DNA of 64,000 nt, taken from NCBI GenBank assembly GCA_950097015.1, contig CATNEN010000005.1, forward strand, positions 1,612,001 through 1,676,000, written 5' to 3'. Every line of letters begins with the position of its first letter. Position 1 is the stretch's first letter. The notes under the pieces are model-generated. The model made no database searches, was not told the origin of the DNA, and saw nothing but the letters and a program-made list of their open reading frames with translations. Of this stretch, positions 11,314 to 34,430 are shown piece after piece. Both the position numbers and the translations under genes were made by a program. This DNA comes from Macrostomum hystrix. Lineage: Eukaryota > Animalia > Platyhelminthes.

Positions 11314-11323
11314 TATATATAAA
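11314..11323 (+). promoter_or_regulatory. Probable TATA box of the lysozyme-like/VWA gene; likely 69-nt 5'UTR intron at 11426-11494
   Basis: TATATATAAA about 190 bp upstream of the ATG at 11509. Donor CAG|GTGAGA at 11426 and acceptor ccccctcgcag| at 11494. Confidence 0.45.
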
Positions 11324-11508
11324 CGAAACAATTTCGTAGGTAAGTTTGCAACAATATTTAATTTCCGTCTTGTTGGTAGTTATACGGAACTTATCGATAC
11401 AATTTGTGCGCTAATATAATTTCAGGTGAGATTTTGTTCCTTCAATTGGTGTTAAAGCTTTTGAAACAACAATCAAGTCGCCACCCCCTCGCAGGAACGA
11501 CGTCGAAA

Positions 11509-13116
11509 ATGGCCAAGATAGCCATAGTCCTACTCTGGTTGGTCGCACAAGTTTCGCTCGCAAACGCTACCGTGGATGCCACTCTCCAGGCCAAAGCTAA
11601 CGGAATCGATGTGGTCCGTTCGACGATTAGCAAGATTCACAAGAGCTGCATATTTCCGAACGACTTCGGGTTCATGCTGCGCGTCGCATTGGTTGAATCT
11701 AATTTCGGGGAAAACTCGCATACATTTCGGACTGACGCGGCAACTGGTGGCAAAGGTATATGGCAGATGGATCGCATTGGATTCGACGACACGAAGCTTG
11801 TGAACAAAGCTACTCTAGACAAGGTGAAGGAGAAGTTCGGCATCGATTGGACAACAATGACGTACGCATCTGAAAACATGAACGTACCGCTCTATAATGC
11901 TCTCGCCGCGCGCCTTCTCCTGTACCGCAAACCAGCAGCCATTCCACCTGGAGTTGAGGCGCAGGCCAACTACTGGAAAACCTACTACAACTCCGCAGAG
12001 GGTAAAGGCACAGTGGCTGACTTCATCAACAAAGTCCAGAGCAGGCCTATCTGTGGCACAGTTGGGGCTGATCTACTCTTTATTCTCGACGCAAGCGGTA
12101 GTATTGGTTCTAGCAGCTTTGAGCTAATGAAGCAGGTGCTAATATCAGTAGCAAAAAAGTTCACCATCGGACCCTCAGCAACACAGGTAGCCGTGATCAC
12201 TTTTGACTCTCAAATTCAGAAACGGATTGACTTTGGAAATTATCCAACTTTCGGCTCTCTCACGACAGCCATCACTAATCTGAGATATACGGGCGGCGGC
12301 ACCATGACACACCTCGCACTGAATCTCGTGGCAAGCATGTTCAGTTCTGCCCGGTCTCTGGAACTCGGTTTTCCTCGGGTGGTAATCGTGCTGACTGACG
12401 GTGCTTCAAATAGCCCTACAGGAACTGTACAGGCAGTAAACAGTTTGAATGCCTACGGCTGGCTTGAACGCTATGCCGTCGGCATGGGAAGCGGAATAAA
12501 CAACGCGGAGCTACAAGCCATAGCTTCAGCATGCTCGAACGTCTATTTGATTCCAAACACCAGCTATATAGCCGCGATCACCGATGATCTGTACGATCTG
12601 GCCTGTCGATCTTCTGTTGCTCTGCCACTGGCCGAAGGCAGCACCGGATATGCCACTATGAGAGGTAGCCTGAATCCAGGAACCAGACGCAACGCTCGCG
12701 ACACGTCGGTATCTCGCGAGAAGGGGAGGACTTACGCCTTGATGTTGACTTCCGGCAGAGCTACTCTGTATGTCTCACGCAGTATGGAGAACCCCAGCTC
12801 GGCTTTGAATGACTTTTCGGCTGTGGCCACGCCATCGAGTCCCGGCCTGGTGTTTGTGAGCTCCAATGACCTGAAGGCTTCGCCCTTGCGACGGAAGCGT
12901 GACACATCGAACGCAACTACGAATAGTAATATCTATTTGTCCATTGTGCCCGCGGATGACAGCGCGTCCGTCAACTTCTGGCTCGACGCCCGTGACGGCG
13001 ACTTCCGCAATTTCTATCGGAATTCCGCTCCCGGATGCCATGCGAATGACCGCTGGCCTAGACTTGCCTGGATCGTCTCCATGATGATTCCAACGATTAT
13101 CGCTGGCAAATTCTGA
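11509..13116 (+). CDS. Secreted, probably GPI-anchored protein: signal peptide, lysozyme/transglycosylase-like domain, VWA domain, furin site and hydrophobic tail (535 aa, no coding introns)
   Basis: Signal peptide MAKIAIVLLWLVAQVSLA. Lysozyme-like motifs ALVES, GIWQM and YWKTYYN. VWA with complete MIDAS (DASGS at 12088, GGTMT, LTDG). RRKR at 12889-12900; the C-terminus RLAWIVSMMIPTIIAGKF has no cytoplasmic tail. Confidence 0.85.
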   Translation: MAKIAIVLLWLVAQVSLANATVDATLQAKANGIDVVRSTISKIHKSCIFPNDFGFMLRVALVESNFGENSHTFRTDAATGGKGIWQMDRIGFDDTKLVNKATLDKVKEKFGIDWTTMTYASENMNVPLYNALAARLLLYRKPAAIPPGVEAQANYWKTYYNSAEGKGTVADFINKVQSRPICGTVGADLLFILDASGSIGSSSFELMKQVLISVAKKFTIGPSATQVAVITFDSQIQKRIDFGNYPTFGSLTTAITNLRYTGGGTMTHLALNLVASMFSSARSLELGFPRVVIVLTDGASNSPTGTVQAVNSLNAYGWLERYAVGMGSGINNAELQAIASACSNVYLIPNTSYIAAITDDLYDLACRSSVALPLAEGSTGYATMRGSLNPGTRRNARDTSVSREKGRTYALMLTSGRATLYVSRSMENPSSALNDFSAVATPSSPGLVFVSSNDLKASPLRRKRDTSNATTNSNIYLSIVPADDSASVNFWLDARDGDFRNFYRNSAPGCHANDRWPRLAWIVSMMIPTIIAGKF

Positions 13117-13709
13117 GAGATCAGCACTATAGGCAAACGGCATCAACGGGTTTATCATTGTTATTTAACAGTAGAAAAGACCAGGCGTTTTTTAAATGAC
13201 AACATCTAGAACATTTTTTTATCCAAAAGGTCAAGATTACTTCTAATTTCATTTATTTTTCTGGAAAAGTAACACTGACAATTTTTTTTTAATTTTGAAA
13301 AACCGCTTTTCAAAAACTGTTCTACTCTTCTGGTTGTTGCCCTGTCCTAAATGACATTTTCACCTTTGTACCTGTAGCTAAGCTTAGTATCTTAAATAAA
13401 TGTTCGAAAACAATTTTTTAATCCAGGTTTTTTATCACTAAAGTAACTGTCGTGTCGTGGCTGGCTAGCCAAACTTGAGCCGCAAATGGGCGAGAGGTTG
13501 TTATTTATTATATTTGGCACTGCACATAGATGTACATGCAGATACGAGTAAAGCATCAGCTAATAGATTAGACGGTTAGGCATAAGCGTACATTGACAGA
13601 CAGAGCAGGCGGGGAGAGAGCAAGCAGTCCTAAACTCAGCGCCAATAACAATTGGGGTGCAGCCCCACACTGCGCACTTCAAGTCAAGTCACGATACAAC
13701 ATCCCCTCA

Positions 13710-14850
13710 TCACCAACGAGGAGACAGTCGGTCTGGGGCGACTCCCTTGGTCGACCTGCAGCTTCGTCGGGGCTCCGGTGTAGCTTCAGCGGTCTGCTGC
13801 GGTGGTGCCGCTGCGTCTGGCCGCTGGCTAATAGGTTCCGGGTTCCGGCCGCCTTCGTCAGGGTTCCGGCCGCCGTCGTCAGGGCTCCGACCGGCATCGT
13901 CAGGATCCCGGCCGCCGTCGTCAGTGTTGTCCGTAACTTCCGCCCGACTTGGACTCGGACACAAACGCAGCTGATCCCGGTGTGCCAGCACAGGCCTGTC
14001 GTCCTTGTCCCGGGTGACCACGGCCGTGTTGTGGCCGGCCTGTACCACAAAGCGGACGGTCTCAGCCGGCACCCCCGGTCGCGACTGGTAGACGAGCGGC
14101 GCATCGGTGTCGAATTGGAGGGTCAGCGGACTTCGCAGCTGTCGCCCCATAAGCGCAGACGGACTGCCACGCCCGTCGCCCCGCGGAGTGGCCCGGTAGT
14201 TAAGCAGCAGCTTGGCGAGGTACGCGTCGAACCTGCCCTGGTGCACGGCGAAGGCCCGCAGCCCCTTCTTGACGGTCTGGACCATGCGCTCGGCGCACCC
14301 GTTTGACTGCGGATGATACGGCGGCGAGTGCATCGGCGAGCAGCCGATCTTCTTGAGCCACTCGTGCAGCTGCTGGTCACGGAACTCCGGAGCATTGTCC
14401 GCCACCAAGGTATGCGGCACACCCAGGCGGGAAAAAATCAAGCGGAGCACCTTGATGACCGTCATCGCGCTCTTGTCGGCAACAGGCACCGCTTCCGGCC
14501 AGCCGGAGAAGGCGTCCACCACAATGAGCAGCAGGCCGAAGCCGGGAACGTGAGCATGGTCCATGTGCACGCGTCTCCAGGGACCATTTTCCGCCGGCCA
14601 GGTGTGGCACGTTCTGGCAGGCATTGGACGGATCTCCGCGCATCGCTGGCATTGCTTGACGAAGTTTTCGACGTCCTCGCAGTGACCCGGCCACCAGGCT
14701 TCCAGCTTGAGTCGATTTCTTGTCGCTAGGGCACCGCAGTGCGAGTCGCCGTGAGCCGCTCGCAGCACGTCTTGCCGCAGCCGGCTAGGCGGGACCACCA
14801 GGTCTCTCAGGCAGACGACGCCACTCTCCACTGAGAGCTGCTGGCGGACG
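13710..14850 (-). CDS. Retrotransposon integrase (HHCC zinc finger + DDE core), uninterrupted frame
   Basis: AHGDSHCG...WWPG...CQRC, then VHMDH, VADNAPEF, YHPQSNGCAERMVQTVK, YRATP and SPSALMGR. No gag, protease, RT or RNase H is present. Confidence 0.9.
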
Positions 14851-14901
14851 GCTTTATACGGTCGCTCCGCTGCCGAGCAGTTGTTCCACGCATTGCTGCG
14901 G

Positions 14902-14919
14902 ATCCTGCTTGCGACGCCA
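14902..14919 (-). promoter_or_regulatory. Primer binding site, complementary to a tRNA-Ser-like 3' end
   Basis: The + strand reads GATCCTGCTTGCGACGCCA, like eukaryotic tRNA-Ser 3' ends (..ATCCTGC-N7-G-CCA). The exact tRNA was not verified. Confidence 0.6.
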
Positions 14920-15369
14920 TTGTCGTGTCGTGGCTGGCTAGCCAAACTTGAGCCGCAAATGGGCGAGAGGTTGTTATTTATTATATTTGGCACTGCACAT
15001 AGATGTACATGCAGATACGAGTAAAGCATCAGCTAATAGATTAGACGGTTAGGCATAAGCGTACATTGACAGACAGAGCAGGCGGGGAGAGAGCAAGCAG
15101 TCCTAAACTCAGCGCCAATAACAATTGGGGTGCAGCCCCACACTGCGCACTTCAAGTCAAGTCACGATACAACAGTAACTTTTACAGACTCAAAAAAAAT
15201 TTGTGTAGTGTAGTCTGAAGTAATGTAAAAGTCAAGTTTATTGCTTGAGGACACAGATCGTTCCAGTGGAGTAGGGAATTCAACCACAAGGCTGCAACCG
15301 CCCAATAATAATTACCGTAATGATGTTTGCAGGAGGGCTGCGGGCAATGGCACATCATTTGGTGACAGT

Positions 15370-19454: not shown

Positions 19455-19796
19455 CTGTGTCTTGTGCACTCGACCGCAGGGTCTCGATCGCTTTACACCG
19501 TCCTGAGAGATGTAATAAACTCGACAACTCTCTGCCAGAACAAGCGGGTCTTGACTTGCGGCAGCGCGAAGTTCAGCCGCATCTAGCTGATCATGATAAG
19601 CCATCGGGGTGAGCAGCTCCTCGATGTAGGCCGTCAGGTTGGCGTCCCGATCATATGCGGCGGCGATTTCGCGAATCCGCTCAGCGTAGCTGCGCGGCGT
19701 CAGCGGCAGCGTGCGCAGCGCGTGCCGGGTGGCCGGACTGGCATCGCACACTGTGACGCTGGGAAACGGCGGTCTGGGCGACCAAGGCATCCAGGT
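19455..19796 (-). CDS. DEG/ENaC exon 1, 3' half (downstream of the LINE insertion)
   Basis: TWMPWSPRPPFPSVTVCDASP matches the FPAVTVCN-type motif. Donor CAG|GTTGAA at 19454. Confidence 0.8.
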
Positions 19797-22700
19797 GGGG
19801 GAGCTTTCGCGACCCCGAGCGCGCCTGGCGCGCTTCCCAATGCTGCCGCCTTCACGTGGCGGGACCGTCCGGACTCACCCCCGGCGAAGTGCAGCGCTCA
19901 CCCTGGACATCGTCTGGGGACAGGACACCTCGGGTTTTTCCCAGCTGGACCAGCCTCACCGGCTCACCTGGCCCAGCTGCTCCTCCGAGCCGGCGACGTG
20001 GAGACCAACCCTGGGCCACCAACGTCGTACTCATGCGGTGGCTGCAGCACTAACGTCCACAGCTTTCGCATTTTACAACTTAACGCCGCCGGCCTCCGCG
20101 CCCGTAAGCTCGAACTCCTCCATTTCCTCGAGGCCAAGTCCATCGATGTCGCCTGTGTTCAGGAGACGAATTTGACGGCGACCGGGTCCCTCCCAAGACT
20201 GCCGGGCTGGCAATTTGCCGCCCGCAGGGACCGTCGAGCCAATCGCGCTGGCGAGCCGGCGGAGACGCCGCACGGCGGAGTCTGCTTCCTGATCAAAGAA
20301 GGTATCGACTTCTCCGAGATCCAGATGCCACCCCCCAAGGCTGTCAACTCGGCCACGGAAGCCTCCGCGGTCACTATTCACGACTCGCGTATCGGCCGCC
20401 CACTCTCGATCATTAACCTCTACATCCCACCGGTCCGTGCAGGAGACGGACGGGTCAGCGACTTCGAACCAGACTGGCTCCCATCCGGCCCCGACACCGT
20501 TATCCTCGGCGACATTAACGCGCACCACGGGATGTGGGACGAGAGCTGCGAGACCGACGACGCCCTGGGGACCGAGTTCGAAAACTGGGCCACGACGTTC
20601 GACTACGTCGCGCTTAACGATGGCTCCTTCACCAGAATCAGCCCCAGAGGCCTGACCAGCGCCCCGGACGTGACCTTCGTCCCGGCCAACTGGCAAGACC
20701 GGATGACCTGGAAGACGGAGGCACACATCGGATCCGACCATCTCCCTATCGTTATCGAGATTCGAAACAGCTCCAAGAGGCCCCCTAAGCGGAAACGGGT
20801 GACCCGCTTCGCCTACCATAAGGCCGACTGGACCCTATTCCGCGAGCTCATTTCCGAAGAACTCAAGCATTGGCAGCATCGCCCACCACGCTCGGTCGCT
20901 GGTGCAACCGTTAAACTGAACCACGCCATCCGTTCAGCCGCTCGAGGAGCGATTCCGCAGGGCTCGCGCCGAGCCCCAGTAGCATGGTGGTGCCCTGAGG
21001 CCGAAGCTGCGTGCACCGCCAGACGTCAGGCCCTCGAAGCTCTCCGCACGGATCCTGACAACGACGAGCTCGCCGCGGCGTATCAAGCCGCGGGTGCTTT
21101 CGCCACCGCGTCCATCCGTAGGGCCAAGGAGGCACTCTGGCAAGAATTCATATCCGACAACTACAATAAACTGGACTCGGCCGCGATCTGGAGAATAATC
21201 CGAGTTCTCGACGGGCGGACACCGGCGGCCAGACCATCCGCAGCCATCAAGGACTCGGCCAACCGCTGCGCCACCACGAACTCACAAAAGGCCAACCTTT
21301 TCTGTAGAGAGTACGCAACGGTCGCGCAACTTCCTAAAGACAAAGTGCGGGACCACACAGTCAAACTTGAGGCCAGAAGAGCCCTTGATGAGCCCTGTGC
21401 GTGCAACGGACAACGCCTGGGAATGTGTGCTGACTTCGACCTAGAGGCGCTCACCCGAGCCCTCCGCGCCATCCCGAGCCGGTCCGCCCCAGGGCTAGAC
21501 GGGATTTCCAACTTGATGCTGAAGAATCTGCCGCCAAAGGGGATCGAGCTCCTCCTCTTCACCATCAACCTTTCTTGGCGTAGCGGCCAGTGTTGCGCTG
21601 CCTGGAAAATCGGCGACATCAGGCCGATACACAAGCCTGGGAAAAGCCCGGACGCGACCTCCAGCTACCGCCCCATCTGCCTCCTTTCCTGCACGGCGAA
21701 AGTCGCGGAACGTCTGGTTAACGAACGCCTCACGCACTACCTGGAGTCCGAGAACCTCATCCACCCGGCCCAGGCCGGCTTCCGCCGCGGTCGCTCTACC
21801 GAAGAGCAGATTGCCGCGGCATCCCAGTACGTCTTCGACGGCTTCCAGAAGAAAAAACCGGCAAACCGTACAGCGATGCTGTTTGGGGACTTTTCGCATG
21901 CATACGAGCGCATGTGGCGACAGGCCCTCATCGCTAAGTTACGCCGTAAGAAAGTCCCGACCTGCACGCGCCGCTGGATTCACTCGTATATCTCCGATCG
22001 ACGTGCCATTGTGACCTGGGACGGCAATCAGAGCCCCCAACGCCTCTTCCCTGAGGGCCTCCCCCAAGGCTCCGTCATCGCCCCGACTCTGTGGACGGTG
22101 TTCGTCGATGACCTGTTGGAGGATGCCCCAGAGGACATATTCTCTCTGGCGTACGCCGACGATACGACCTTTGGCGCACAAGGCACGAATTTGAAGATCT
22201 GTGAAGCAAGACTGCAAAGCGCGGCGAACTGGCTCGTCGAGTGGTGCACGACTTGGAAAGTCGACCTGAACAAATCCAAAACAGTCGTCACCTACTTCTC
22301 CCTCGACCCACGTGAGACAAACGGCAAGGCGAGACCAAATATCAGACTCGGAGACATGCCAGCCCCATTCGAGGAACACCCCAAGATGCTGGGCGTGTAC
22401 CTCGATTCACAGCTCACGTTCCGCCACCATGCGGCGGTCCAAAAGCGCAACCTGCAGAAGCGGACAGGCGCCCTGAGGTGCCTTGCTGGTCGAGACTGGG
22501 GGCGCGACCCGAGATCTCTCAGACAGCTTTACCGCACCTACGCGGAAGCGGCGGTCCTACACGGCGCCTCCTCTTGGATGAGCTTTGCGTCCGACGCCTG
22601 CCGCCGGGAAGTTGAGACCCAGCACCTCGCCGCAGCGCGCGTTATCTCGGGGTGCTGCCGATCCACCCCGACTGCCGCGCTCCTCAAAGAGGCCGGACTG

Positions 22701-23932
22701 GCTCCACTCAACACCTCGGCTACGGCCGCTGCGGCTACGCTGATGGAGAAAACCCGGCGAGCAAGACAACAGACACCGCTCAGAACGCTGGCCGAACTCG
22801 ACGTTCAACCGAGAATCCGCGCTCACGGCAACCACGGCGATTTCAGACGCAACTGGAGGACGGAGGCCAATGGCCTGATCGCCCGCGCAGGCCTCGCGGG
22901 ATCCAAGCGCGAACCTGACAACGTGCCACCGCCTCCCCTATCGCCTAACGACAGGATCCACTTCGCAGCGGAACTCGCCAAACCGACCAACCGGGAGGAT
23001 CCCCCGCACGTCAGACGCCAAGCCGCACTGGAGACGCTGGACCGGCTTCCGGAACCCGCCTTGGAACTCTGGACCGACGGCTCGGCCTCCGGAGGCACCA
23101 ATAGAGGCGGATCCGGTGCGGCCCTGTTCATCCGCGGAGCCGCGCCAATCTACCTGACTGCTCCAGCGGGCGCGTTCAGCTCTTCTTTTAGGGCGGAGGA
23201 GTGTGCCCTCCGCATTGGTCTCCTAGCAGCCCTGGAGCGCGTCCCATGGCCCGGCACGGCAGAACTGCGTTGCGCCACTGATTCGCAGGCCCTCATCCGA
23301 TCGCTCGAACAAGGCCCGCACTCTCACCTGTCCCCCTGCGGCCGGGACATCTGGCGCCTCCTCCTCAAAGTCCCTGCGGACCACCACGTGACTATCCAAT
23401 GGGTCCCAGGACACTGTGACCTGAGGCGCAACGACCTGGCGGACAACCTCGCAAAAGACGCCGCCAGACTCCCACAAGACCAAGCGGAAATCGACCTAAA
23501 CAGTGCCAAGTCCGCGATCCGCCGCACACTGGCCGCCGAGGCTCGCGCTGCCTACGAAGCGGACCCACACTGCCGGACGCACCGCGCTGCCTTCCGCGAA
23601 GACCGCAGGTCCGAGGCGACTCTCAGCAGACGCGAGTTGATCACGCTAGCGCAACTTCGCACGGGCCACTCGCCTCTGCTGGCCCAGTACCGCCACCGGA
23701 TTGACCAAGAACAGCCCGCGTCCTGCGGGCACTGCGGACACCAGGAGGAGGACCTGAAGCATGTGATGCTGGAATGCCCAGCTCACGCCCAGACCCGCAA
23801 CCGCGTCCTCGGCCCTAACCCGACGCTGGCCATCCTATCCGACGACGGCCCCCGTGTCCTGTCCTATCTCCAGGCGATAGGGTCGCTGACCCGACCCCCG
23901 GACCTGCCCGGCCAGGAACGTCTAACTAACTA
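19797..23932 (+). mobile_element. Apparently full-length Ingi-like (I-group) non-LTR retrotransposon inserted antisense in DEG/ENaC exon 1
   Basis: 16-bp TSD ACCAAGGCATCCAGGT at 19781-19796 and 23933-23948; (CTAA)3 tail. One open frame encodes 2A, APE (LQLN, QET, GDINAH, SDHLPI), RT (YRPICLL, QAGFR, PQGS, YADD), RNase H (TDGS, AEECA, TDSQA, WVPGH) and CCHC. Confidence 0.95.
19953..20018 (+). other. 2A-like ribosome-skipping (StopGo) peptide LAQLLLRAGDVETNPG/P
   Basis: Exact D-V-E-x-N-P-G-P motif at 19995-20018, preceded by a Leu-rich helix. Confidence 0.9.
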
Positions 23933-24263
23933 ACCAAGGCATCCAGGTCATTACAACGTCGCCGCGACGATAGACAATGCTCAGGCTGACTATGTTGTAC
24001 AACAGGAATGTGAAGAACGCCAGGACGGCGACGGTCCAGAGGGCTCGTTGGCAGCTGGAGTGTGAGCTGAGGATGCGTGGCAAGCCGCGCACCGAGGTCT
24101 TGCGCATGCAGTCAATTAACAGGCGCTTCACCTGGCTGCGACTCGGTTGAGACACGGCCTGCGGAGCTGGTGACTCAATCGTTGCTGCGTTCATGGAGCC
24201 CTTGTTCGCCTCGATACAGCCAAACGGTGGTGGCAATCGGTTGATCTCAACCTTGGACGACAT
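23933..24263 (-). CDS. DEG/ENaC exon 1, 5' half (N-terminus and TM1); start codon probable
   Basis: MSSKVEIN...RKTSVRGLPRI...QRALWTVAVLAFFTFLLYNIVSLSIVYRRGDVVMT. Removing the LINE and one TSD restores the frame into 19780. Confidence 0.8.
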
Positions 24264-25735: not shown

Positions 25736-26339
25736 GATCTGGTTCTTTAGGAGTATCAACTGAATCTTTCAGACTGTACTAAACCAACCTTCTGAACGAA
25801 CAGCAAATCATTTCGAATGCTTTAGTGGAAAACAAGAAATAGTCATAGCTTTTCACGATAGTCTGTCCTTTAAGTTTCACCCTTCGTATTCATCAAGTAA
25901 TTCAGTGTGCAACAGCTGCACAAGCTTGTGTTAGGCTATGCTTTTTCTGAATCGGTTGCACCTGTGTACTGGGAAACGTCTATTCGTGTTTCCGCTAGGC
26001 AACCAGTCCCGTAAGACCTATCGCGGAAACGTCTATTGGATTATCGACCGCTGTAGTGAAGCACCACTAGTCAAATCTTCATCTAAAAATATTTTGCCTT
26101 CCTACCTGACCAGGTCATTTCATCGCTAACAATTAGCAAAAGATTGGTTGACATAGAATATCTCACACTAGTTAAACAAATGTGTAAAAGTGCTAATACA
26201 CACGCTAATCTGCTAGCTGGATTGCTTCTCTCGTTTAGATCATGAAAAACCTGCACTTTCCGTCTTGAACAAATATGACCGAATAAAGTAGGTCAACCAG
26301 ATTTCTACCCCTCGTTCAAACACCACGAACCACTGGAGA

Positions 26340-27568
26340 GAAGAGAGACAATGCTGATGGGAGAGAGACAAGGCTGATGGGAGACAGAGACAAGGCTGAT
26401 GGGAGAGAGACAAGGCTGATGGGAGAGAGAGACAAGGCTGATGGGAGAGAGACAAGGCTGATGGGAGAGAGACAAGGCTGATGGGAGAGAGAGACAAGGC
26501 TGATGGGAGAGAGACAAGGCTGATGGGAGAGAGAGACAAGGCTGATGGGAGAGAGAGACAAGGCTGATGGGAGAGCGACAAGGCTGATGGGAGAGAGACA
26601 AGGCTGATGGGAGAGCGACAAGGCTGATGGGAGAGAGAGACAAGGTTGATGGGAGAGAGAGACAAGGCTGATGGGAGAGAGAGACAAGGCTGATGGGAGA
26701 GAGAGACAAGGCTGATGGGAGAGAGACAAGGCTGATGGGAGAGAGACAAGGCTGATGGGAGAGCGACAAGGCTGATGGGAGAGAGAGACAAGGCTGATGG
26801 GAGAGAGAGACAAGGCTGATGGGAGAGAGAGACAAGGCTGATGGGAGAGAGAGACAAGGCTGATGGGAGAGAGACAAGGCTGATGGGAGAGAGACAAGGC
26901 TGATGGGAGAGCGACAAGGCTGATGGGAGAGAGAGACAAGGTTGATGGGAGAGAGAGACAAGGCTGATGGGAGAGAGACAAGGCTGATGGGAGAGAGAGA
27001 CAAGGCTGATGGGAGAGAGAGACAAGGTTGATGGGAGAGAGAGACAAGGCTGATGGGAGAGAGAGACAAGGTTGATGGGAGAGAGAGACAAGGCTGATGG
27101 GAGAGAGACAAGGCTGATGGGAGAGCGACAAGGCTGATGGGAGAGAGAGACAAGGCTGATGGGAGAGCGACAAGGCTGATAGGAGAGAGAGACAAGGCTG
27201 ATGGGAGAGAGACAAGGCTGATGGGAGAGAGAGACAAGGCTGATGGGAGAGAGAGACAAGGCTGATGGGAGAGAGACAAGGCTGATGGGAGAGAGAGACA
27301 AGGCTGATGGGAGAGAGACAAGGTTGATGGGAGAGAGAGACAAGGCTGATGGGAGAGCGACAAGGCTGATAGGAGAGAGAGACAAGGCTGATGGGAGAGA
27401 GACAAGGCTGATGGGAGAGAGAGACAAGGCTGATGGGAGAGAGAGACAAGGCTGATGGGAGAGAGAGACAAGGCTGATGGGAGAGAGAGACAAGGCTGAT
27501 GGGAGAGAGAGACAAGGCTGATGGGAGAGAGAGACAAGGCTGATGGGAGAGAGAGACAAGGCTGATGG
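26340..27568. repeat. 20-22-bp minisatellite (GACAAGGCTGATGGGA(GA)n)
   Basis: Seen directly in the sequence. Confidence 0.97.
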
Positions 27569-28038
27569 GAGTTGGCTGGCTAGGTGGGGAGTTGGCTGGC
27601 TAGGTGGGGAGTTGGCTGGCTAGGTGGGGTGTTGGGTGGCTAGGTGGGGAGTTGGCTGGCTAGGTGGGGAGTTGGCTGGCTAGGTGGGGTGTTGGGTGGC
27701 TAGGTGGGCAGTTGGGTGGCTAGGTGGGGTGTTGGGTGGCTAGGTGGGGTGTTGGGTGGCTAGGTGGGGAGTTGGCTGGCTAGGTGGGGAGTTGGGTGGC
27801 TAGGTGGGGTGTTGGCTGGCTAGGTGGGGAGTTGGCTGGCTAGGTGGGGAGTTGGGTGGCTATGTGGGGAGTTGGCTGGCTAAGTGGAGAGTTGGCTGGC
27901 TAGGTGGGGAGTTGGCTGGCTAGGTGGGGAGTTGGCTGGCTAGGTGGGGTGTTGGGTGGCTAGGTGGGGAGTTGGCTGGCTAGGTGGGGAGTTGGCTGGC
28001 TAGGTGGGGAGTTGGCTGGCTAGGTGGGCAGTTGGGTG
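27569..28038. repeat. G-rich 20-bp minisatellite (GTTGGCTGGCTAGGTGGGGA)n
   Basis: Seen directly; the same family recurs at 30915-31750 and 33020-34430. Confidence 0.97.
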
Positions 28039-28359
28039 TTTTTTTATTAAAAATATGTCATTAAAAAGTTTTGCTTTGAGTGCAAGAATAACGTTTGACG
28101 CATGAAAACTGGGCTAGAGAAAAGGGGTGGTCGGGTATCGGGAAAGCCACTCGTTCTATTAAAGCGCAAGGCAGAAGCCCTAAGCCTTGTCTCTCGAAAC
28201 GAAACTTAAAAAGCTTTCTTCTGGCTCGTGTCCACCGCCTTTCACGCCGTCCAACTTGAGCGTGTAAAGCCAAGTCTTTTGTTTTAGACAGATAAGGAGC
28301 AGTGTCCCAGTTTTTATTAAAATAAATTCAGCTTTTTACTTTTTAATTTAAAAGCAGCA

Positions 28360-28441
28360 ATGAACAATTGGAAAGTAATGCTAATGCAAAGCGCTTTGGC
28401 CAACATGTTTGCCGATGACGAGGACTCTGCGCCTATCTCAT
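28360..28441 (+). CDS. PIM-family kinase, probable exon 1
   Basis: ATG at 28360, open to the donor T|GTAAGT at 28442. Phase 1 matches the acceptor tttgacag| at 28530. Confidence 0.65.
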
Positions 28442-28530
28442 GTAAGTTAAATCACGCTCAATTTTATCTTTTGAAGCAAGCCTGCCTGAAAACATATCTC
28501 CCATCCTTGCTCAATCCCATACTTTGACAG

Positions 28531-29645
28531 TTGAAGTACCGAAGCGGCAAGAGCAAGTGGAACAAGAGGTGGACCATTCGCCAACAGCGCTGCCCACAGA
28601 TTCGGCAGCAGATTCCTTGGAGTGGCATCGTCTGGAGGACTTCCGCCGCTGCTACATGGTTGGCACCGAGATCGGTCGCGGCGGCTTCGGCCGAGTCTAC
28701 AATGCCACCAGACGTTGCGACGGCGCCGAGTTTGTAGTTAAGGTCATGGAGAAGAGAAAGATGACCTGGCATAAACTGCCCTGCGAGAAACAAGTCCCAG
28801 TCGAAATCATGCTGCTGCACAAGTGCCGCAACGTCTCTGGCATTGTTCAACCAGTCGAATACTTTGAGGGCGAGCACGAGTGGCTGGTTGTCATGCACAG
28901 ACTCCGCCGCTGCAAGGACCTGTTCGACTACATCTCTAACAAGCGCTACCTGGACGAGTCCGAGGCTAAGCGTCTGCTCCGTCAGCTGCTGCACACCCTG
29001 GTTGACTGCCATCACACCGGCGTGCTGCACCGCGACGTCAAAAACGAGAACCTGCTGATCGACCTGACAGACGGCTCTCTGCGCCTAATCGACTTCGGCT
29101 CCGGAGCCCTGCTTAGAGAGGCCGACTACACTGACTTCAATGGCACCCGGGTGTACAGCCCGCCAGAATGGATCAGGTCGCACCGCTACAATGGCAAACA
29201 GGCCGAGGTGTGGTCAATTGGAATCCTACTGTTTGACATGGTCTGCGGCGACATACCGTTTAAACACGACGACCAGATCTGCGACTGCACGCCCGTGTTC
29301 AAGCGCAAGATTAGCAGCGAATGCCGCGACCTCATCTCCGCCTGCTTGCAGTGTGACCCGGCCAAGAGACCCAGCCTGGAGCAGATGCTGCTTCATCCCT
29401 GGCTTGTTGCCGAGGAAACTATTGAGCCCAACTCTATGCCTGGGACGACAAAGCTGTCCACCCAGCAGCAGCAGCAGCAGCAGTCAAACATGCCGCCTCC
29501 GCCGCCGCCTTCGTCGTGCGCCTCCCTGGAGGAGCTGGAGTCGGTTTACTCGTCGTCCAGAATAGCTTCGGCCGCGTCGTCGTTCTCAGATTATCGTCCC
29601 TGCAGCCACGTGTGCAAGGACTCTGGCTACGGCGGATATTGCTGA
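28531..29645 (+). CDS. PIM: PIM-family Ser/Thr kinase, exon 2
   Basis: GRGGFGRVY, VPVEI, DLFDYI, HRDVKNENLLID, LIDFGSG, YTDFNGTRVYSPPEWI, HRYNG and VWSIGILLFDMVCGDIPF are diagnostic of PIM kinases. Confidence 0.92.
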
Positions 29646-29849
29646 TTTTCTGTCAGCCAATGTTTGCTCTTTTTTATTGTCCTGTTTTAGAATTCAAATT
29701 GGCGCCAAAACTTACGTAAAAGTTCGTACTTCGGACATGTAAAATTTTTGGTTAGTTTTGGCGCCAGTTTAAATTTCACTAGCTCTTTCAGGCCCCCCCT
29801 CCCTGTAAAGTCCCTCCGTTGGCCTAGACCCCTCACCCTCCCCTACCCT

Positions 29850-30330
29850 CTCTCTCCTCTCCCCTCACTGTAAGGTCCCAACCCACCCCTCCCTGTAAGG
29901 TCCCTGGTTCGGACCCCCCGCCCCATAAGGCCCCTGGTTTAAACTCCCCTCCCCATAAGGCCCCTGGTTTAAACCCCCCTCCCTGTAAGGTCCCTGGTTC
30001 GGACCCCCCGCCCCATAAGGCCCCTGGTTTAAACTCCCCTCCCCATAAGGCCCCTGGTTTAAACCCCCCTCCCCATAAGGTCCCTGGTTCGAACCCCCTC
30101 CCTGTAAGGTCCCGGGTTCGACCTCCGTCCCCATAAGGTCCCTGGTTCGAACCCCCTCCCCATAAGGTCCCTGGTTCGAACCCCCTCCCCGTAAGGTCCT
30201 GGGTTCGACCCCCGTCCCCATAAGGTCCCTGGTTCGAACCCCCCTCCCCATAAGGTCCCTGATTTGAACACCCCTTCCTGTTGGTTCCCCGGTTCGAACG
30301 CCCCTCCCCATAAGGTCCCTAGTTCGAACC
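29850..30330. repeat. ~28-31-bp minisatellite (CCCCATAAGGTCCCTGGTTCGAACCCC..)n
   Basis: Seen directly in the sequence. Confidence 0.9.
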
Positions 30331-30409
30331 CGAATAATCATGTAGCGATATTTTAGTCAACAAAATCTCTGCATCAGCTCTTTGTATCTCAATGTGTTGT
30401 ATACAGCAA

Positions 30410-30552
30410 TGAGCATTTAGCAATGAGCTTTTAGTGATAAGTGTTTAGCAATGAGCATTTAGTGATGAGCATTTAGCAATGAGTGTTTAGCGATGAGCAT
30501 TTAGCAATGAGTGTTTAGCAATGAGCATTTAGCAATGAGCATTTAGTGATGA
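30410..30552. repeat. 14-bp repeat (GCAATGAGCATTTA)n
   Basis: Seen directly in the sequence. Confidence 0.85.
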
Positions 30553-30607
30553 GTGTGATATGGTGATACGTACAAGTTGTGTGGGCTGTAGGATGCTGCA
30601 TTGGAAC

Positions 30608-30910
30608 AGCTGAATATGCCGATGCAAAAAGTGCAATTGCAAAAAGTGCAAATAGCTGCGTGTCTTGTGCTCGATAAAATATTGTTTTCAATTTTGTCGG
30701 TCGTGTTTTCGTGCATTGAGGCGCAAATAAATATTCTCCCCTCCATTCTAAGAAGGGCTCTGGTAGAGCATGTTTTGGTCTTCAACTGTTCATTTATTTT
30801 ATTTCAGCTGCAGTGAGTGTAGGTGAGGCTCAGGGGCCTAGGTGAGTCTGGTCATGCGACTTGGTCATTAGAGCAACTGTGCATTTATGAAGTACTGGCG
30901 ACTTGATCCA
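30608..30910. repeat. Unclassified dispersed repeat shared with 60586-60885
   Basis: 30608-30748 matches 60586-60732 in direct orientation. About 30842-30909 matches ~60815-60883 in inverted orientation. Confidence 0.75.
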
Positions 30911-30914
30911 AGGT

Positions 30915-31750
30915 GGGGAGTTGCTAGCTGTGGGGGAGTTGGCTGGCTAGGTGGGGAGCTGGCTGGCTAGGTGGGGAGTTGGCTTGCTAGGTGGGGAGTT
31001 GGCTGGCTAGGTGGGGAGTTGGCTGGCTAGGTGGGGAGTTGGGTGGCTATGTGGGGAGTTGGCTGGCTAAGTGGGGAGTTGGCTGGCTAGGTGGGGAGTT
31101 GGCTGGCTAGGTGGGGAGTTGGCTGGCTAGGTGGGGTGTTGGGTGGCTAGGTGGGGAGTTGGCTGGCTAGGTGGGGAGTTGGCTGGCTAGGTGGGGTGTT
31201 GGGTGGCTAGGTGGGCAGTTGGGTGGCTAGGTGGGGTGTTGGGTGGCTAGGTGGGGTGTTGGGTGGCTAGGTGGGGAGTTGGCTGGCTAGGTGGGGAGTT
31301 GGCTGGCTAGGTGGGGTGTTGGGTGGCTAGGTGGGGAGTTGGCTAGGTGGGGAGTTGGGTGGCTAGGTGGGGAGTTAGCTGGCTAGGTGGGCAGTTGGGT
31401 GGCTAGGTGGGGAGTTGGCTAGGTGGGGTGTTGGCTAGGTGGGGAGTTAGGTGGCTAGGTGGGGTGTTGGCTAGGTGGGCAGTTGGGTGGCTAGGTGGGG
31501 AGTTGGCTAGGTGGGGTGTTGGCTAGGTGGGGAGTTAGGTGGCTAGGTGGGGTGTTGGCTAGGTGGGGAGTTGGGTGGCTGGGTGGGCAGTTGGGTGGCT
31601 AGGTGGGCAGTTGGGTGGCTAGGTGGGGAGTTGGGTGGCTAGGTGGGGAGTTGGCTAGGTGGGGTGTTGGCTAGGTGGGGAGTTGGGTGGCTAAAAGGGC
31701 AGTTGGGTGGCTAGGTGGGCAGTTGGGTGGCTAGTTGGGGAGTTGGCTAG
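30915..31750. repeat. G-rich 16/20-bp minisatellite, second block
   Basis: Seen directly in the sequence. Confidence 0.95.
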
Positions 31751-31844
31751 TTTTTTATTTTTTGTTGGATAATCATTTCTGTTCACAAAATGATTCCAGG
31801 GCTGTCTATTGTCGCGCCAGTCTGCGATGGGTCTCAGGTCAGCA

Positions 31845-32430
31845 AGAGAGCGAGAGCGACAGAGAGCGAGAGAGCGAGAGCGAAAGCGAGAGCGAAAGCG
31901 AGAGCGAAAGCGAGAGCGAAAGCGAGAGCGAAAGCGAGAGCGAAAGCGAGAGCGAAAGCGAGAGCGAAAGCGAGAGCGAAAGCGAGAGCGAAAGCGAGAG
32001 CGAAAGCGAGAGCGAAAGCGAGAGCGAAAGCGAGAGCGAAAGCGAGAGCGAAAGCGAGAGCGAAAGCGAGAGCGAGAGCGAAAGCGAGAGCGAAAGCGAA
32101 AGCGAGAGCGAAAGCGAGAGCGAAAGCGAGAGCGAAAGCGAGAGCGAAAGCGAGAGCGAAAGCGAGAGCGAAAGCGAGAGCGAAAGCGAGAGCGAAAGCG
32201 AGAGCGAAAGCGAGAGCGAAAGCGAGAGCGAAAGCGAGAGCGAAAGCGAGAGCGAAAGCGAGAGCGAAAGCGAGAGCGAAAGCGAGAGCGAAAGCGAGAG
32301 CGAAAGCGAGAGCGAAAGCGAGAGCGAAAGCGAGAGCGAAAGCGAGAGCGAAAGCGAGAGCGAAAGCGAGAGCGAGAGCGAGAGAGCGAGAGCGTGCGAG
32401 CGAGAGCGAGAGAGCGAGAGAGCGAGAGCA
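31845..32430. repeat. 12-bp repeat (GCGAGAGCGAAA)n
   Basis: Near-perfect array; it is the source of the ES/RAKA/ERKR ORFs in the track. Confidence 0.98.
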
Positions 32431-33019
32431 AGTGGCAGGGAAGGAAAATAATAACATAGGATGAGTACTTACGGCGTTCCCACCAGAGTACTGATACGTC
32501 TGAGGGGCGTGCCTTCTCGCCGGACCCGCACCCAGAACGCATTGGCACAAACGATCCCGCACCTGTGCGGGTTTGACTTGCATGTTTACCCAGATGGCAA
32601 ATTTGCCAACTGGGCAAACAAAATGTCCACCGACAGGTGCCGGCTCAATTATTCGAGCTCCCATGCCTTCAGGGCCCCACTGCACTAGCTCCTCCACCTT
32701 CATCTTGTTGTTGCTGGTTAGCGCTGGTTGTCAAATGAAGAAATCAGCTGAGAGTCGGTTGGTTGGTTGCAGGTCCCGTTGCTGTTGCTGCTGCTGCTGA
32801 CACGGGGTTTTACTGTTGCTTGTAGGGTTAGGCTTAGGGTTAGCTGTTGGCTGACCGAAAAGCTGAAATGCCATAGATATCTTGCCACTATATCAGCTAT
32901 AAATATATAGCGTTCGTGATATGATATTCATTGGTTCATGCTGTTTCTAATATTATTGTGCACAAAACATGGAGCATTGTTTTTTTGTTCATTTTTGCTT
33001 TAGACTGGAGAATGAGATG

Positions 33020-34430
33020 AGGGGTGGCTAGGTTGGGAATTGGGTGGCTAGGTGGGGAGTTGGGTGGCTAGGTTGGGAGGTTTGTCGGGCTAGGTGGGGA
33101 GTTGGCTAGGTGGGGAGTTGGCTGGCTAGGTGGGGAGTTGGCTGGCTAGGTGGGGAGTTGGCTGGCTAGGTGGGGTGTTGGGTGGCTAGGTGGGGAGTTG
33201 GGTGGCTAGGTGGGGAGTTGGCTGGCTAGGTGGGGTGTTGGGTGGCTAGGTGGGCAGTTGGGTGGCTAGGTGGGGAGTTGGCTAGGTGGGGTGTTGGCTA
33301 GGTGGGGAGTTAGGTGGCTAGGTGGGGAGTTGGCTAGGTGGGGAGTTGGCTAGGTGGGGAGTTGGCTAGGTGGGGTGTTGGCTAGGTGGGGAGTTAGGTG
33401 GCTAGGTGGGGTGTTGGCTAGGTGGGGAGTTGGGTGGCTAGGTGGGGAGTTGGGTGGCTAGGTGGGGAGTTGGCTAGGTGGGGTGTTGGCTAGGTGGGGA
33501 GTTGGGTGGCTAGGTGGGCAGTTGGGTGGCTAGGTGGGGAGTTGGCTAGGTGGGGTGTTGGCTAGGTGGGGAGTTGGGTGGCTGGGTGGGCAGTTGGGTG
33601 GCTAGGTGGGCAGTTGGGTGGCTAGGTGGGGAGTTGGCTAGGTGGGGTGTTGGCTAGGTGGGGAGTTGGGTGGCTAAAAGGGCAGTTGGGTGGCTAGGTG
33701 GGGTGTTGGCTAGGTAGGGTGTTGGCTAGGTGGGGTGTTGGCTAGGTGGGGAGTTGGGTGGCTAAAAGGGCAGTTGGGTGGCTAGGTGGGCAGTTGGGTG
33801 GCTAGTTGGGGAGTTGGCTAGGTGGGGAGTTGGGTGGCTAAAAGGGCAGTTGGGTGGCTAGGTGGGGTGTTGGCTAGGTAGGGTGTTGGCTAGGTGGGGT
33901 GTTGGCTAGGTGGGGAGTTGGGTGGCTAAAAGGGCAGTTGGGTGGCTAGGTGGGCAGTTGGGTGGCTAGGTGGGGAGTTGGCTAGGTGGGGTGTTGGCTA
34001 GGTGGGGAGTTGGGTGGCTAAAAGGGCAGTTGGGTGGCTAGGTGGGGTGTTGGCTAGGTAGGGTGTTGGCTAGGTGGGGTGTTGGCTAGGTGGGGAGTTG
34101 GCTAGGTGGGGAGTTGGGTGGCTAAAAGGGCAGTTGGGTGGCTAGGTGGGCAGTTGGGTGGCTAGGTGGGCAGTTGGGTGGCTAGGTAGGGAGTTGGCTG
34201 GCTAGGTGGGCAGTTGGGTGGCTAGGTGGGGAGTTGGCTAGGTGGGGTGTTGGCTAGGTGGGGAGTTGGGTGGCTAAAAGGGCAGTTGGGTGGCTAGGTG
34301 GGGTGTTGGCTAGGTAGGGTGTTGGCTAGTTGGGGTGTTGGCTAGGTGGGGAGTTGGGTGGCTAAAAGGGCAGTTGGGTGGCTAGGTGGGCAGTTGGGTG
34401 GCTAGTTGGGGAGTTGGCTAGATGTTGGCT
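33020..34430. repeat. G-rich 16/20-bp minisatellite, third block
   Basis: Seen directly in the sequence. Confidence 0.95.

Follow-up and report, generated by a model that had tools for sequence, protein, structure and literature searches.

A lysozyme-like domain shared with a phage protein family and joined to a von Willebrand factor A domain in a gene of the flatworm Macrostomum hystrix

What use might a flatworm have for a protein that joins a domain of a phage protein family to a von Willebrand factor type A (VWA) domain? The question is raised by an uninterrupted open reading frame (ORF) of 535 codons, the longest one locally, that occupies positions 11509-13116 of the forward strand (ATG at 11509, stop codon at 13114-13116) in a stretch of 64,000 nucleotides (nt) from the Macrostomum hystrix assembly GCA_950097015.1 (contig CATNEN010000005.1, positions 1,612,001 to 1,676,000), which is referred to below as the window. 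An earlier note, made from the letters of the window alone, had read it as a surface protein that fuses a lysozyme- or lytic-transglycosylase-like domain to a VWA domain with a complete metal-ion-dependent adhesion site (MIDAS). We find that this is a real and expressed flatworm gene, and that its N-terminal domain represents a hitherto undescribed family within the lysozyme-like superfamily, found in animals in a conserved architecture that is likewise undescribed. As for its function, the best explanation, and one that we hold with some confidence if by no means with certainty, is a surface-tethered, peptidoglycan-cleaving lysozyme-like enzyme equipped with a MIDAS-bearing VWA domain.

The N-terminal domain and its phage relatives

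The N-terminal domain (N-domain) has the following features, numbered by amino acid (aa) and by position in the window:

11569..12051 (+): lysozyme-like domain of the phrog_3108 family, aa 21-181
11695-11697 (+): putative catalytic Glu63
11755-11766 (+): G83-I-W-Q86
from 11971 (+): W156/Y160/N161 motif

The motif positions given in the earlier note are exact (ALVES from aa 60, with Glu63 at nt 11695, and GIWQM at nt 11755), and the two further motifs that it quoted, NVPLYNALAARLLL and YWKTYYNSAEGKGT, are both found in the ORF; YWKTYYN begins at aa 155.

The proposed lysozyme-like fold is borne out by structure prediction. An AlphaFold2 (AF2) model of the N-domain, for which an alignment of 124 sequences (A2) served as input, has a predicted local distance difference test (pLDDT) score of 95.7. 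When this model was compared exhaustively with VIA-align, seven chains reached a Z score of at least 8, and the best 50 matches listed, with 112-143 aligned residues, all belong to the lysozyme superfamily. The Z scores were 9.0 for MltE, 8.8 for MltC, 8.7 and 8.4 for fungal muramidases, 8.5 for both the phi6 lysin and phiKZ gp144, 7.9 for Slt70, 7.7 for a glycoside hydrolase family 23 (GH23) chitinase, 6.7 for destabilase, 5.9 for g-type lysozyme, 5.8 for c-type lysozyme and 5.6 for EtgA; the matches also include muramidase effectors of type VI secretion systems, FlgJ, GH19 chitinases and alpha-lactalbumin. Foldseek gave nothing at E<=0.001 against the PDB, and its weak hits (E>0.5), headed by a Ralstonia GH23 chitinase, were nearly all enzymes of the lysozyme superfamily. 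It is because the VIA-align list is so uniformly made up of this superfamily, rather than on account of the Z values alone, that we conclude in favor of the fold.

The Glu-Ser and G-x-x-Q motifs, which the earlier note had taken to be catalytic, find counterparts, at the usual spacing, in known enzymes. In hhalign the segment FMLRVALVES...GIWQ was placed onto LLRKVAWTES...GMMQ of T7 gp16 (E 3.7e-4), including Glu37, which we take to be the residue of its lytic transglycosylase motif. A comparison of the family profile with PDB sequences gave a weak match to EtgA (E 0.13) in which the ES and GIMQ motifs are aligned; the designed protein 9i38, another match of a profile in the PDB sequences, is spurious. 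In the models, Glu63 terminates a helix (residues 55-64), after which come a loop and a short hairpin bearing GIWQ, the arrangement expected in lysozymes. Across the 124-sequence alignment the Glu is kept in 123 sequences, the Ser/Thr and Gly83 in all 124, Pro146 in 123, Trp156 in 121, Tyr160 in 119, Gln86 in 112 and Asp88, which comes after the GIWQ hairpin, in 96. The pattern Y159-Y160-N161-x3-G165-x-G167 is also conserved; the T7 gp16 and EtgA profile alignments ended short of this third motif region.

In the earlier note YWKxYYN..GKG was said to resemble uncharacterized phage or bacterial proteins, and this motif indeed marks a phage family, phrog_3108 of the PHROG database (“unknown function”). 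The match to its profile has an E value of 1.9e-20 and places aa 55-178 on profile positions 30-154 of 160, while phage members match the same profile with E values of 3e-25 to 4e-53. Free-standing proteins of ~160 aa from several phages were found with tblastn (29-38% identity), among them gp54 of Klebsiella phage phiKO2 and proteins of Salmonella phage PMBT28 and Pseudomonas phage PSA28; the family also has a member in Pseudoalteromonas phage B8b, and a search with a protein language model independently ranked phage clusters first. An NCBIfam scan of the N-domain returned nothing relevant. A word-index search with the N-domain alone gave three short relatives; an exhaustive search with a profile of seven sequences gave 4944 cluster representatives at E<=1e-3, 2932 of them at E<=1e-10, and with thousands of such matches the motifs of the N-domain cannot be a matter of chance. 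The phage proteins of phrog_3108 are thus direct homologs of the N-domain, of equal length and with the same conserved residues, but they are free-standing, lack a signal peptide and fall into a clade apart from the animal sequences.

Two types of gene context are seen for the phage members. The gene of the PMBT28 homolog (AUZ95556) has those of a holin (phrog_785, E 7e-27) and of an Rz-like spanin (phrog_89, E 1e-5) immediately downstream, and the genome of this phage has no other annotated lysin. In phiKO2, gp54 follows gp53, a holin-like protein of 101 aa with three hydrophobic segments; we do not claim gp56 of this phage as an o-spanin, its annotated frame having no lipobox. The other context, which is independent of this one, is that of the ejection proteins. 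On a contig of a T7-like podovirus, the domain forms the C-terminal part of an 853-aa protein (P0038; L010:10001-12562) encoded between a T7_gp14-like gene and a gene for 1514 aa, which is the slot of gp15, an internal virion protein of the kind that passes through the cell wall during infection. Numerous proteins of 600-1250 aa that lack a signal peptide similarly have the domain at their C-terminus, and one of them has a Phage_lysozyme2 domain in addition. Both positions, in the lysis cassette and among the ejection proteins, point to peptidoglycan cleavage. The 1514-aa gene of the podovirus contig, which is gp16-like, has no Pfam hit on record. The L010 phage may carry its cell-wall-cutting domain on a different internal virion protein than T7 does.

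A fusion with VWA across animal phyla

Among 36 long relatives that have a signal peptide, 30 carry a VWA domain and five a CBM_14 domain, and some also have EGF, MAM or LDLa domains. Members of the family that can be named come from the brachiopod Lingula anatina (XP_013385192.1, called “collagen alpha-1(VII) chain”), the echinoderms Amphiura filiformis (XP_072021860.1) and Acanthaster planci (XP_022080169.1), the molluscs Haliotis cracherodii (XP_071097398.1) and Tegillarca granosa, two mites, Halotydeus destructor and Medioppia subpectinata, and the annelid Owenia fusiformis. The VWA domain starts at most ~10 residues after the lysozyme-like domain in Lingula, Amphiura, Acanthaster, Halotydeus, Medioppia and Macrostomum lignano, and the VWA-type match of Haliotis has its start at the same place; Owenia has the domain twice, together with CBM_14, and no VWA. 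A mollusc Atlas cluster of 82 members, with VWA and CBM_14, matches with template modeling (TM) scores of 0.75-0.87, the value of 0.75 being that of its superposition on the whole model. On another eukaryotic contig (L001) the same fusion is interrupted by spliceosomal introns, with a GTAAG donor directly after the domain.

In the tree, the characterized phage proteins fall into a clade of their own (98% support), and the window sequence groups with other Macrostomum-type sequences (97%) inside a large clade most of whose members have signal peptides. A single clade for the 34 rows that are confidently eukaryotic, as against 22 phage or prokaryotic ones, was not rejected by an approximately unbiased (AU) test (p 0.51), the groups having been picked after the tree; metagenomic proteins in this tree were labeled “eukaryote-like” or “phage-like” heuristically, from signal peptide and architecture. 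The presence of the fusion in at least six animal phyla, and its interruption by introns in another eukaryote, argue against a recent or Macrostomum-specific transfer, and on this distribution we take the domain family to be old in bilaterians. Of the horizontal origin that the earlier note had considered, it is therefore the homology to a phage family that stands and the recent or Macrostomum-specific event that does not; it is plausible that the domain passed at some time, in one direction or the other and once or more often, between animals and phages or bacteria.

A cnidarian Atlas cluster called “putative Matrilin-2” (490 aa) has the same layout with an enzyme domain of another family, a Pesticin/T4-lysozyme-type domain (PF16754, in 92% of the members) being joined to a VWA; this cluster superposes on aa 97-516 of our full-length model with a TM score of 0.54. 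The combination of a phage-type lysozyme domain with a VWA may have arisen more than once.

Outside the N-domain, the flatworm protein has these features:

11509..11568 (+): signal peptide, aa 1-20, a hydrophobic N-terminus with presumed cleavage after A-N-A
12070..12564 (+): VWA domain, aa 188-352, from Pfam PF00092, PDB matches and conservation
12613..12996 (+): C-terminal beta-sandwich, aa 369-496, from the full-length AF2 model
12889-12900 (+): dibasic RRKR, aa 461-464, inside the sole disordered loop of the beta-sandwich
13021..13113 (+): C-terminus resembling a glycosylphosphatidylinositol (GPI) signal, with small residues (NSAPGC..AND), a short spacer and a hydrophobic tail at aa 518-535

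The VWA domain is matched by PF00092 with an E value of 7.3e-33 (114.7 bits against a gathering cut-off of 23.8), and among solved structures it comes closest to collagen VI alpha-3 and the mussel proximal thread matrix protein. Its MIDAS is complete, as had been claimed: D194-x-S196-x-S198, T265 and D297 are all there and are kept in 18 of 20 aligned fusion proteins. The two cysteines that the earlier note saw bracketing the N-domain also exist (C47 and C182), but it is improbable that they pair with each other, given how they co-vary with C342 and C366. Cys47 (11647-11649), in the N-domain, and Cys342 (12532-12534), in the VWA, are both present in 10 fusion proteins and both absent in seven, which suggests an inter-domain disulfide that would lock the enzyme domain to the VWA. 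Cys182 and Cys366 are likewise jointly present or absent in the aligned fusion proteins, and co-variation would make them the usual VWA-bracketing pair.

The earlier note had ended the gene at 12620. This is actually where the VWA ends, and the frame extends for 165 more codons (~500 nt) that add a beta-sandwich of ~130 aa and a hydrophobic C-terminal tail. The full-length AF2 model (pLDDT 85.2, predicted TM score 0.81) has strands across residues 369-496, low pLDDT at 459-471 and a hydrophobic terminal helix. The beta-sandwich region is conserved in three relatives (P0047, P0046 and P0028); Pfam and NCBIfam scans of the C-terminal region gave no meaningful match, and a feature search with the beta-sandwich turned up weak PPC/UPF0669 leads alone. 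At the spot of the RRKR loop, a possible proprotein-convertase site, relatives have RTKR, RRKR, RRRR or FKR. Homologs also start with hydrophobic leaders and finish in a hydrophobic tail with 0-3 residues beyond it, and from its C-terminal sequence the flatworm protein is probably GPI-anchored. The product is thus probably a secreted, surface-anchored protein of three domains: lysozyme-like, VWA and beta-sandwich.

The gene and its surroundings

The following features of the transcript and promoter region flank the coding sequence (CDS), the untranslated regions being abbreviated UTR:

11314..11319 (+): TATA-like box, ~55 nt 5' of the first RNA-covered base; a pattern match, with a presumed promoter role
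11374..11425 (+): 5'UTR exon 1 (minimum extent), without ATG; RNA contigs X4 and X5
11426..11494 (+): 5'UTR intron of 69 nt with the boundaries GTGAG...CTCGCAG; RNA contigs
13395..13400 (+): AATAAA polyadenylation signal in the 3'UTR; a pattern match

Transcription is documented by RNA contigs from one study (three small public runs), which are 100% identical to the window from 11374 to about 13452-13477 and colinear with it across the CDS. The 5'UTR intron, of the GT..AG type, is skipped in contigs of two of these runs; the gene had been called intronless, which is correct for its coding sequence and wrong for the gene as a whole. Within the RNA-covered mRNA there is no ATG 5' of the one at 11509. 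At the other end, 30 nt at 13448-13477 (in the region 13446-13477) are common to several unrelated RNA contigs that diverge beyond them. A short repeated element at the end of the 3'UTR may blur the exact end of the transcript.

The closest proteins have 76%, 71% (Macrostomum lignano BOX15_Mlig019589g1) and 58% identity. When the M. lignano locus is compared with the window, the CDS alone aligns (69% DNA identity) and no synteny is detected between the two; nor is there a paralog elsewhere within the window. This would fit DNA from a flatworm related to M. lignano, or else a divergent paralog of its gene. Directly 3' of the gene, on the opposite strand, is a 439-codon ORF (13710-15029, -) that resembles the integrase part of a long terminal repeat (LTR) retro-element and has a zinc-finger-like H..H..C..C pattern and a long tail that is acidic and Gly-Arg-rich. 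A 1446-codon ORF at 19593-23933 is like those of long interspersed nuclear elements (LINEs). With such LTR-retrotransposon-like and LINE-like ORFs, the surroundings of the gene are eukaryotic. Farther away, positions 26000-34000 show strong asymmetry between the strands, with a GC skew of up to +0.56 and an AT skew of up to +0.28 (2-kb bins), together with numerous overlapping ORFs on both strands, as in low-complexity or tandem-repeat DNA, and positions 38000-60000 are unusually even in base composition, with a GC content of 0.50-0.54 and near-constant skews over ~22 kb, without ORFs of at least 200 codons. This last region is possibly a long repeat array.

Function, alternatives and significance

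How might such a protein work? In the mechanism that we propose, Glu63, at the end of its helix and followed by Ser, would be the general acid, and the GIWQ hairpin and the W156/Y160/N161 motif would line a glycan-binding cleft. The domain would cleave the backbone of N-acetylmuramic acid and N-acetylglucosamine (MurNAc-GlcNAc) of the bacterial wall, acting as a muramidase or else as a lytic transglycosylase. The VWA, probably rigid against the first domain, would bind an acidic ligand via its metal ion and so hold the enzyme on matrix or mucus, on partner proteins or on the surfaces of microbes. The beta-sandwich and the lipid anchor would put the assembly at the cell surface, from which the dibasic loop may permit proteolytic processing or release. 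That the protein is catalytic, that its substrate is peptidoglycan and that it serves in antibacterial defense or digestion are predictions from sequence, and we likewise infer the “binds then cleaves” mechanism and the immune role.

Among known systems, the family-1 lytic transglycosylases of the soluble lytic transglycosylase (SLT) type, such as T7 gp16, MltE/Slt70 and EtgA, have the same fold and the same Glu-Ser with a G-x-x-Q ~20 residues further on. The likeness to T7 gp16 extends to location, since phages carry the N-domain family too in an ejection protein, and the Tyr/Asn-rich motif near the C-terminus of the N-domain presumably recalls the AYNxG of SLT. However, the N-domain does not match Pfam SLT (PF01464), has 10-16% identity to such enzymes when structurally aligned, contains an additional helical segment between the motifs and has a hallmark of its own, W-K-x-Y-Y-N-x-x-x-G-x-G-T. 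The animal g-type (GH23), c-type and i-type/destabilase lysozymes are likewise secreted, are of the same structural superfamily and would share the proposed role, but they have no detectable sequence relation to the N-domain and their motifs differ; it is the N-domain family that is fused to VWA and beta-sandwich and probably surface-anchored. The Pif/BMSP shell matrix proteins of molluscs have a VWA followed by CBM_14, as do the mollusc members of the N-domain family, and Pif, like the flatworm protein, has a dibasic site, RMKR, at which it is cleaved (PMC11291548). No lysozyme-like N-domain is described for Pif/BMSP in that work (PMC11291548), in which the words “lysozyme” and “transglycosylase” do not occur, and the flatworm protein differs in having no chitin-binding domain, in an animal that has no shell.

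Several observations weigh against an active peptidoglycan-cleaving enzyme. The N-domain (scanned as aa 1-184 and as aa 20-184) has no Pfam match even at E 10, and hence none to a lysozyme or SLT model. Z scores of 8-9 are in the middling range of the tool and the Foldseek E values exceed 0.5, while the hhalign match to T7 gp16 has a probability of just 36% and covers 36 columns. The location of Glu63 in the cleft is deduced from secondary structure and alignment, catalysis by members of the family, phage and animal alike, is predicted from their sequences, and it is from gene position that the phage members would be endolysins. Furthermore, mollusc and annelid members carry the chitin-binding CBM_14 and the best structural matches include a GH23 chitinase, so that the substrate in animals could be chitin.

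This last point leads to the alternative of a domain that is active but cuts chitin or some other beta-1,4 glycan, be it from food, from fungi or from the matrix of the animal itself, the protein then being a matrix-remodeling or digestive glycanase and not an antibacterial enzyme. CBM_14 does accompany the domain in Haliotis, in Owenia and in the mollusc cluster, and it is a chitinase, the Ralstonia enzyme with its Z of 7.7, that tops the Foldseek list, with GH19 chitinases matched as well. On the other hand, lysis cassettes and ejection proteins call for peptidoglycan cleavage, the Macrostomum protein and most of the fusions have no chitin-binding domain, and CBM_14 could merely anchor an antibacterial enzyme on a chitinous lining; we consider such a glycanase unlikely. 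Alternatively, the animal domain could have lost catalysis and have become a glycan- or peptidoglycan-binding module of an adhesive or extracellular-matrix protein. The VWA does match matrix proteins best (the mussel thread protein and collagen VI), databases label relatives as “collagen alpha” chains, and inactive proteins of the lysozyme fold exist, alpha-lactalbumin from our own match list being an example. However, the Glu is retained in 78 of the 79 animal-type sequences, i.e. those with a signal peptide, along with the Ser/Thr, G83, W156 and Y160, and such constraint on the Glu and its neighboring residues is the pattern expected of an active site. A purely binding role therefore seems rather improbable to us.

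It could also be asked whether the flatworm acquired the gene horizontally in recent times, or whether the assembly is contaminated with bacterial or phage DNA, given a CDS without introns and an N-domain with phage relatives. Against this are the spliced intron of the 5'UTR, the retro-element ORFs that flank the gene, the homologs of 58-76% identity in Macrostomum-type data, the distribution of the fusion over many animal phyla, intron-split in another eukaryote, and the compatibility of a single eukaryotic clade with the AU test (p 0.51). We regard both of these origins as extremely improbable, and return to the surface-tethered, peptidoglycan-cleaving enzyme as the best explanation.

No description of this family turned up in the literature that was searched, which is no proof that there is none; the AXL3 and Pif/BMSP papers have no bearing on it, and Pfam, NCBIfam and PHROG contain no functional annotation of the N-domain. 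Our broader proposal is tentative, and we would not be greatly surprised to see it fail: besides the c-, g-, i- and T4-type lysozymes, animals would possess a further class of cell-wall-cleaving enzyme, of common stock with a domain of phage endolysins and ejection proteins, which was fused to a MIDAS-bearing VWA before the protostome/deuterostome split and is still active from flatworms to echinoderms as a “bind-and-cut” protein, antibacterial and tethered to the surface.

If the domain is active, this would provide a function for phrog_3108 and for thousands of “hypothetical” proteins in lysis cassettes and among ejection proteins. It would also give invertebrate immunity or digestion an extra lysozyme-type enzyme that has been hidden under such names as “collagen alpha chain” or “uncharacterized”. 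A conserved fusion to a MIDAS-bearing VWA is unusual among glycan-cleaving enzymes and, with the cysteine pair that may join the two domains, it constitutes a testable model of ligand-directed cell-wall cleavage on an animal surface. In Macrostomum lignano both RNA interference and in situ hybridization are feasible, which would allow this model to be put to a direct test.

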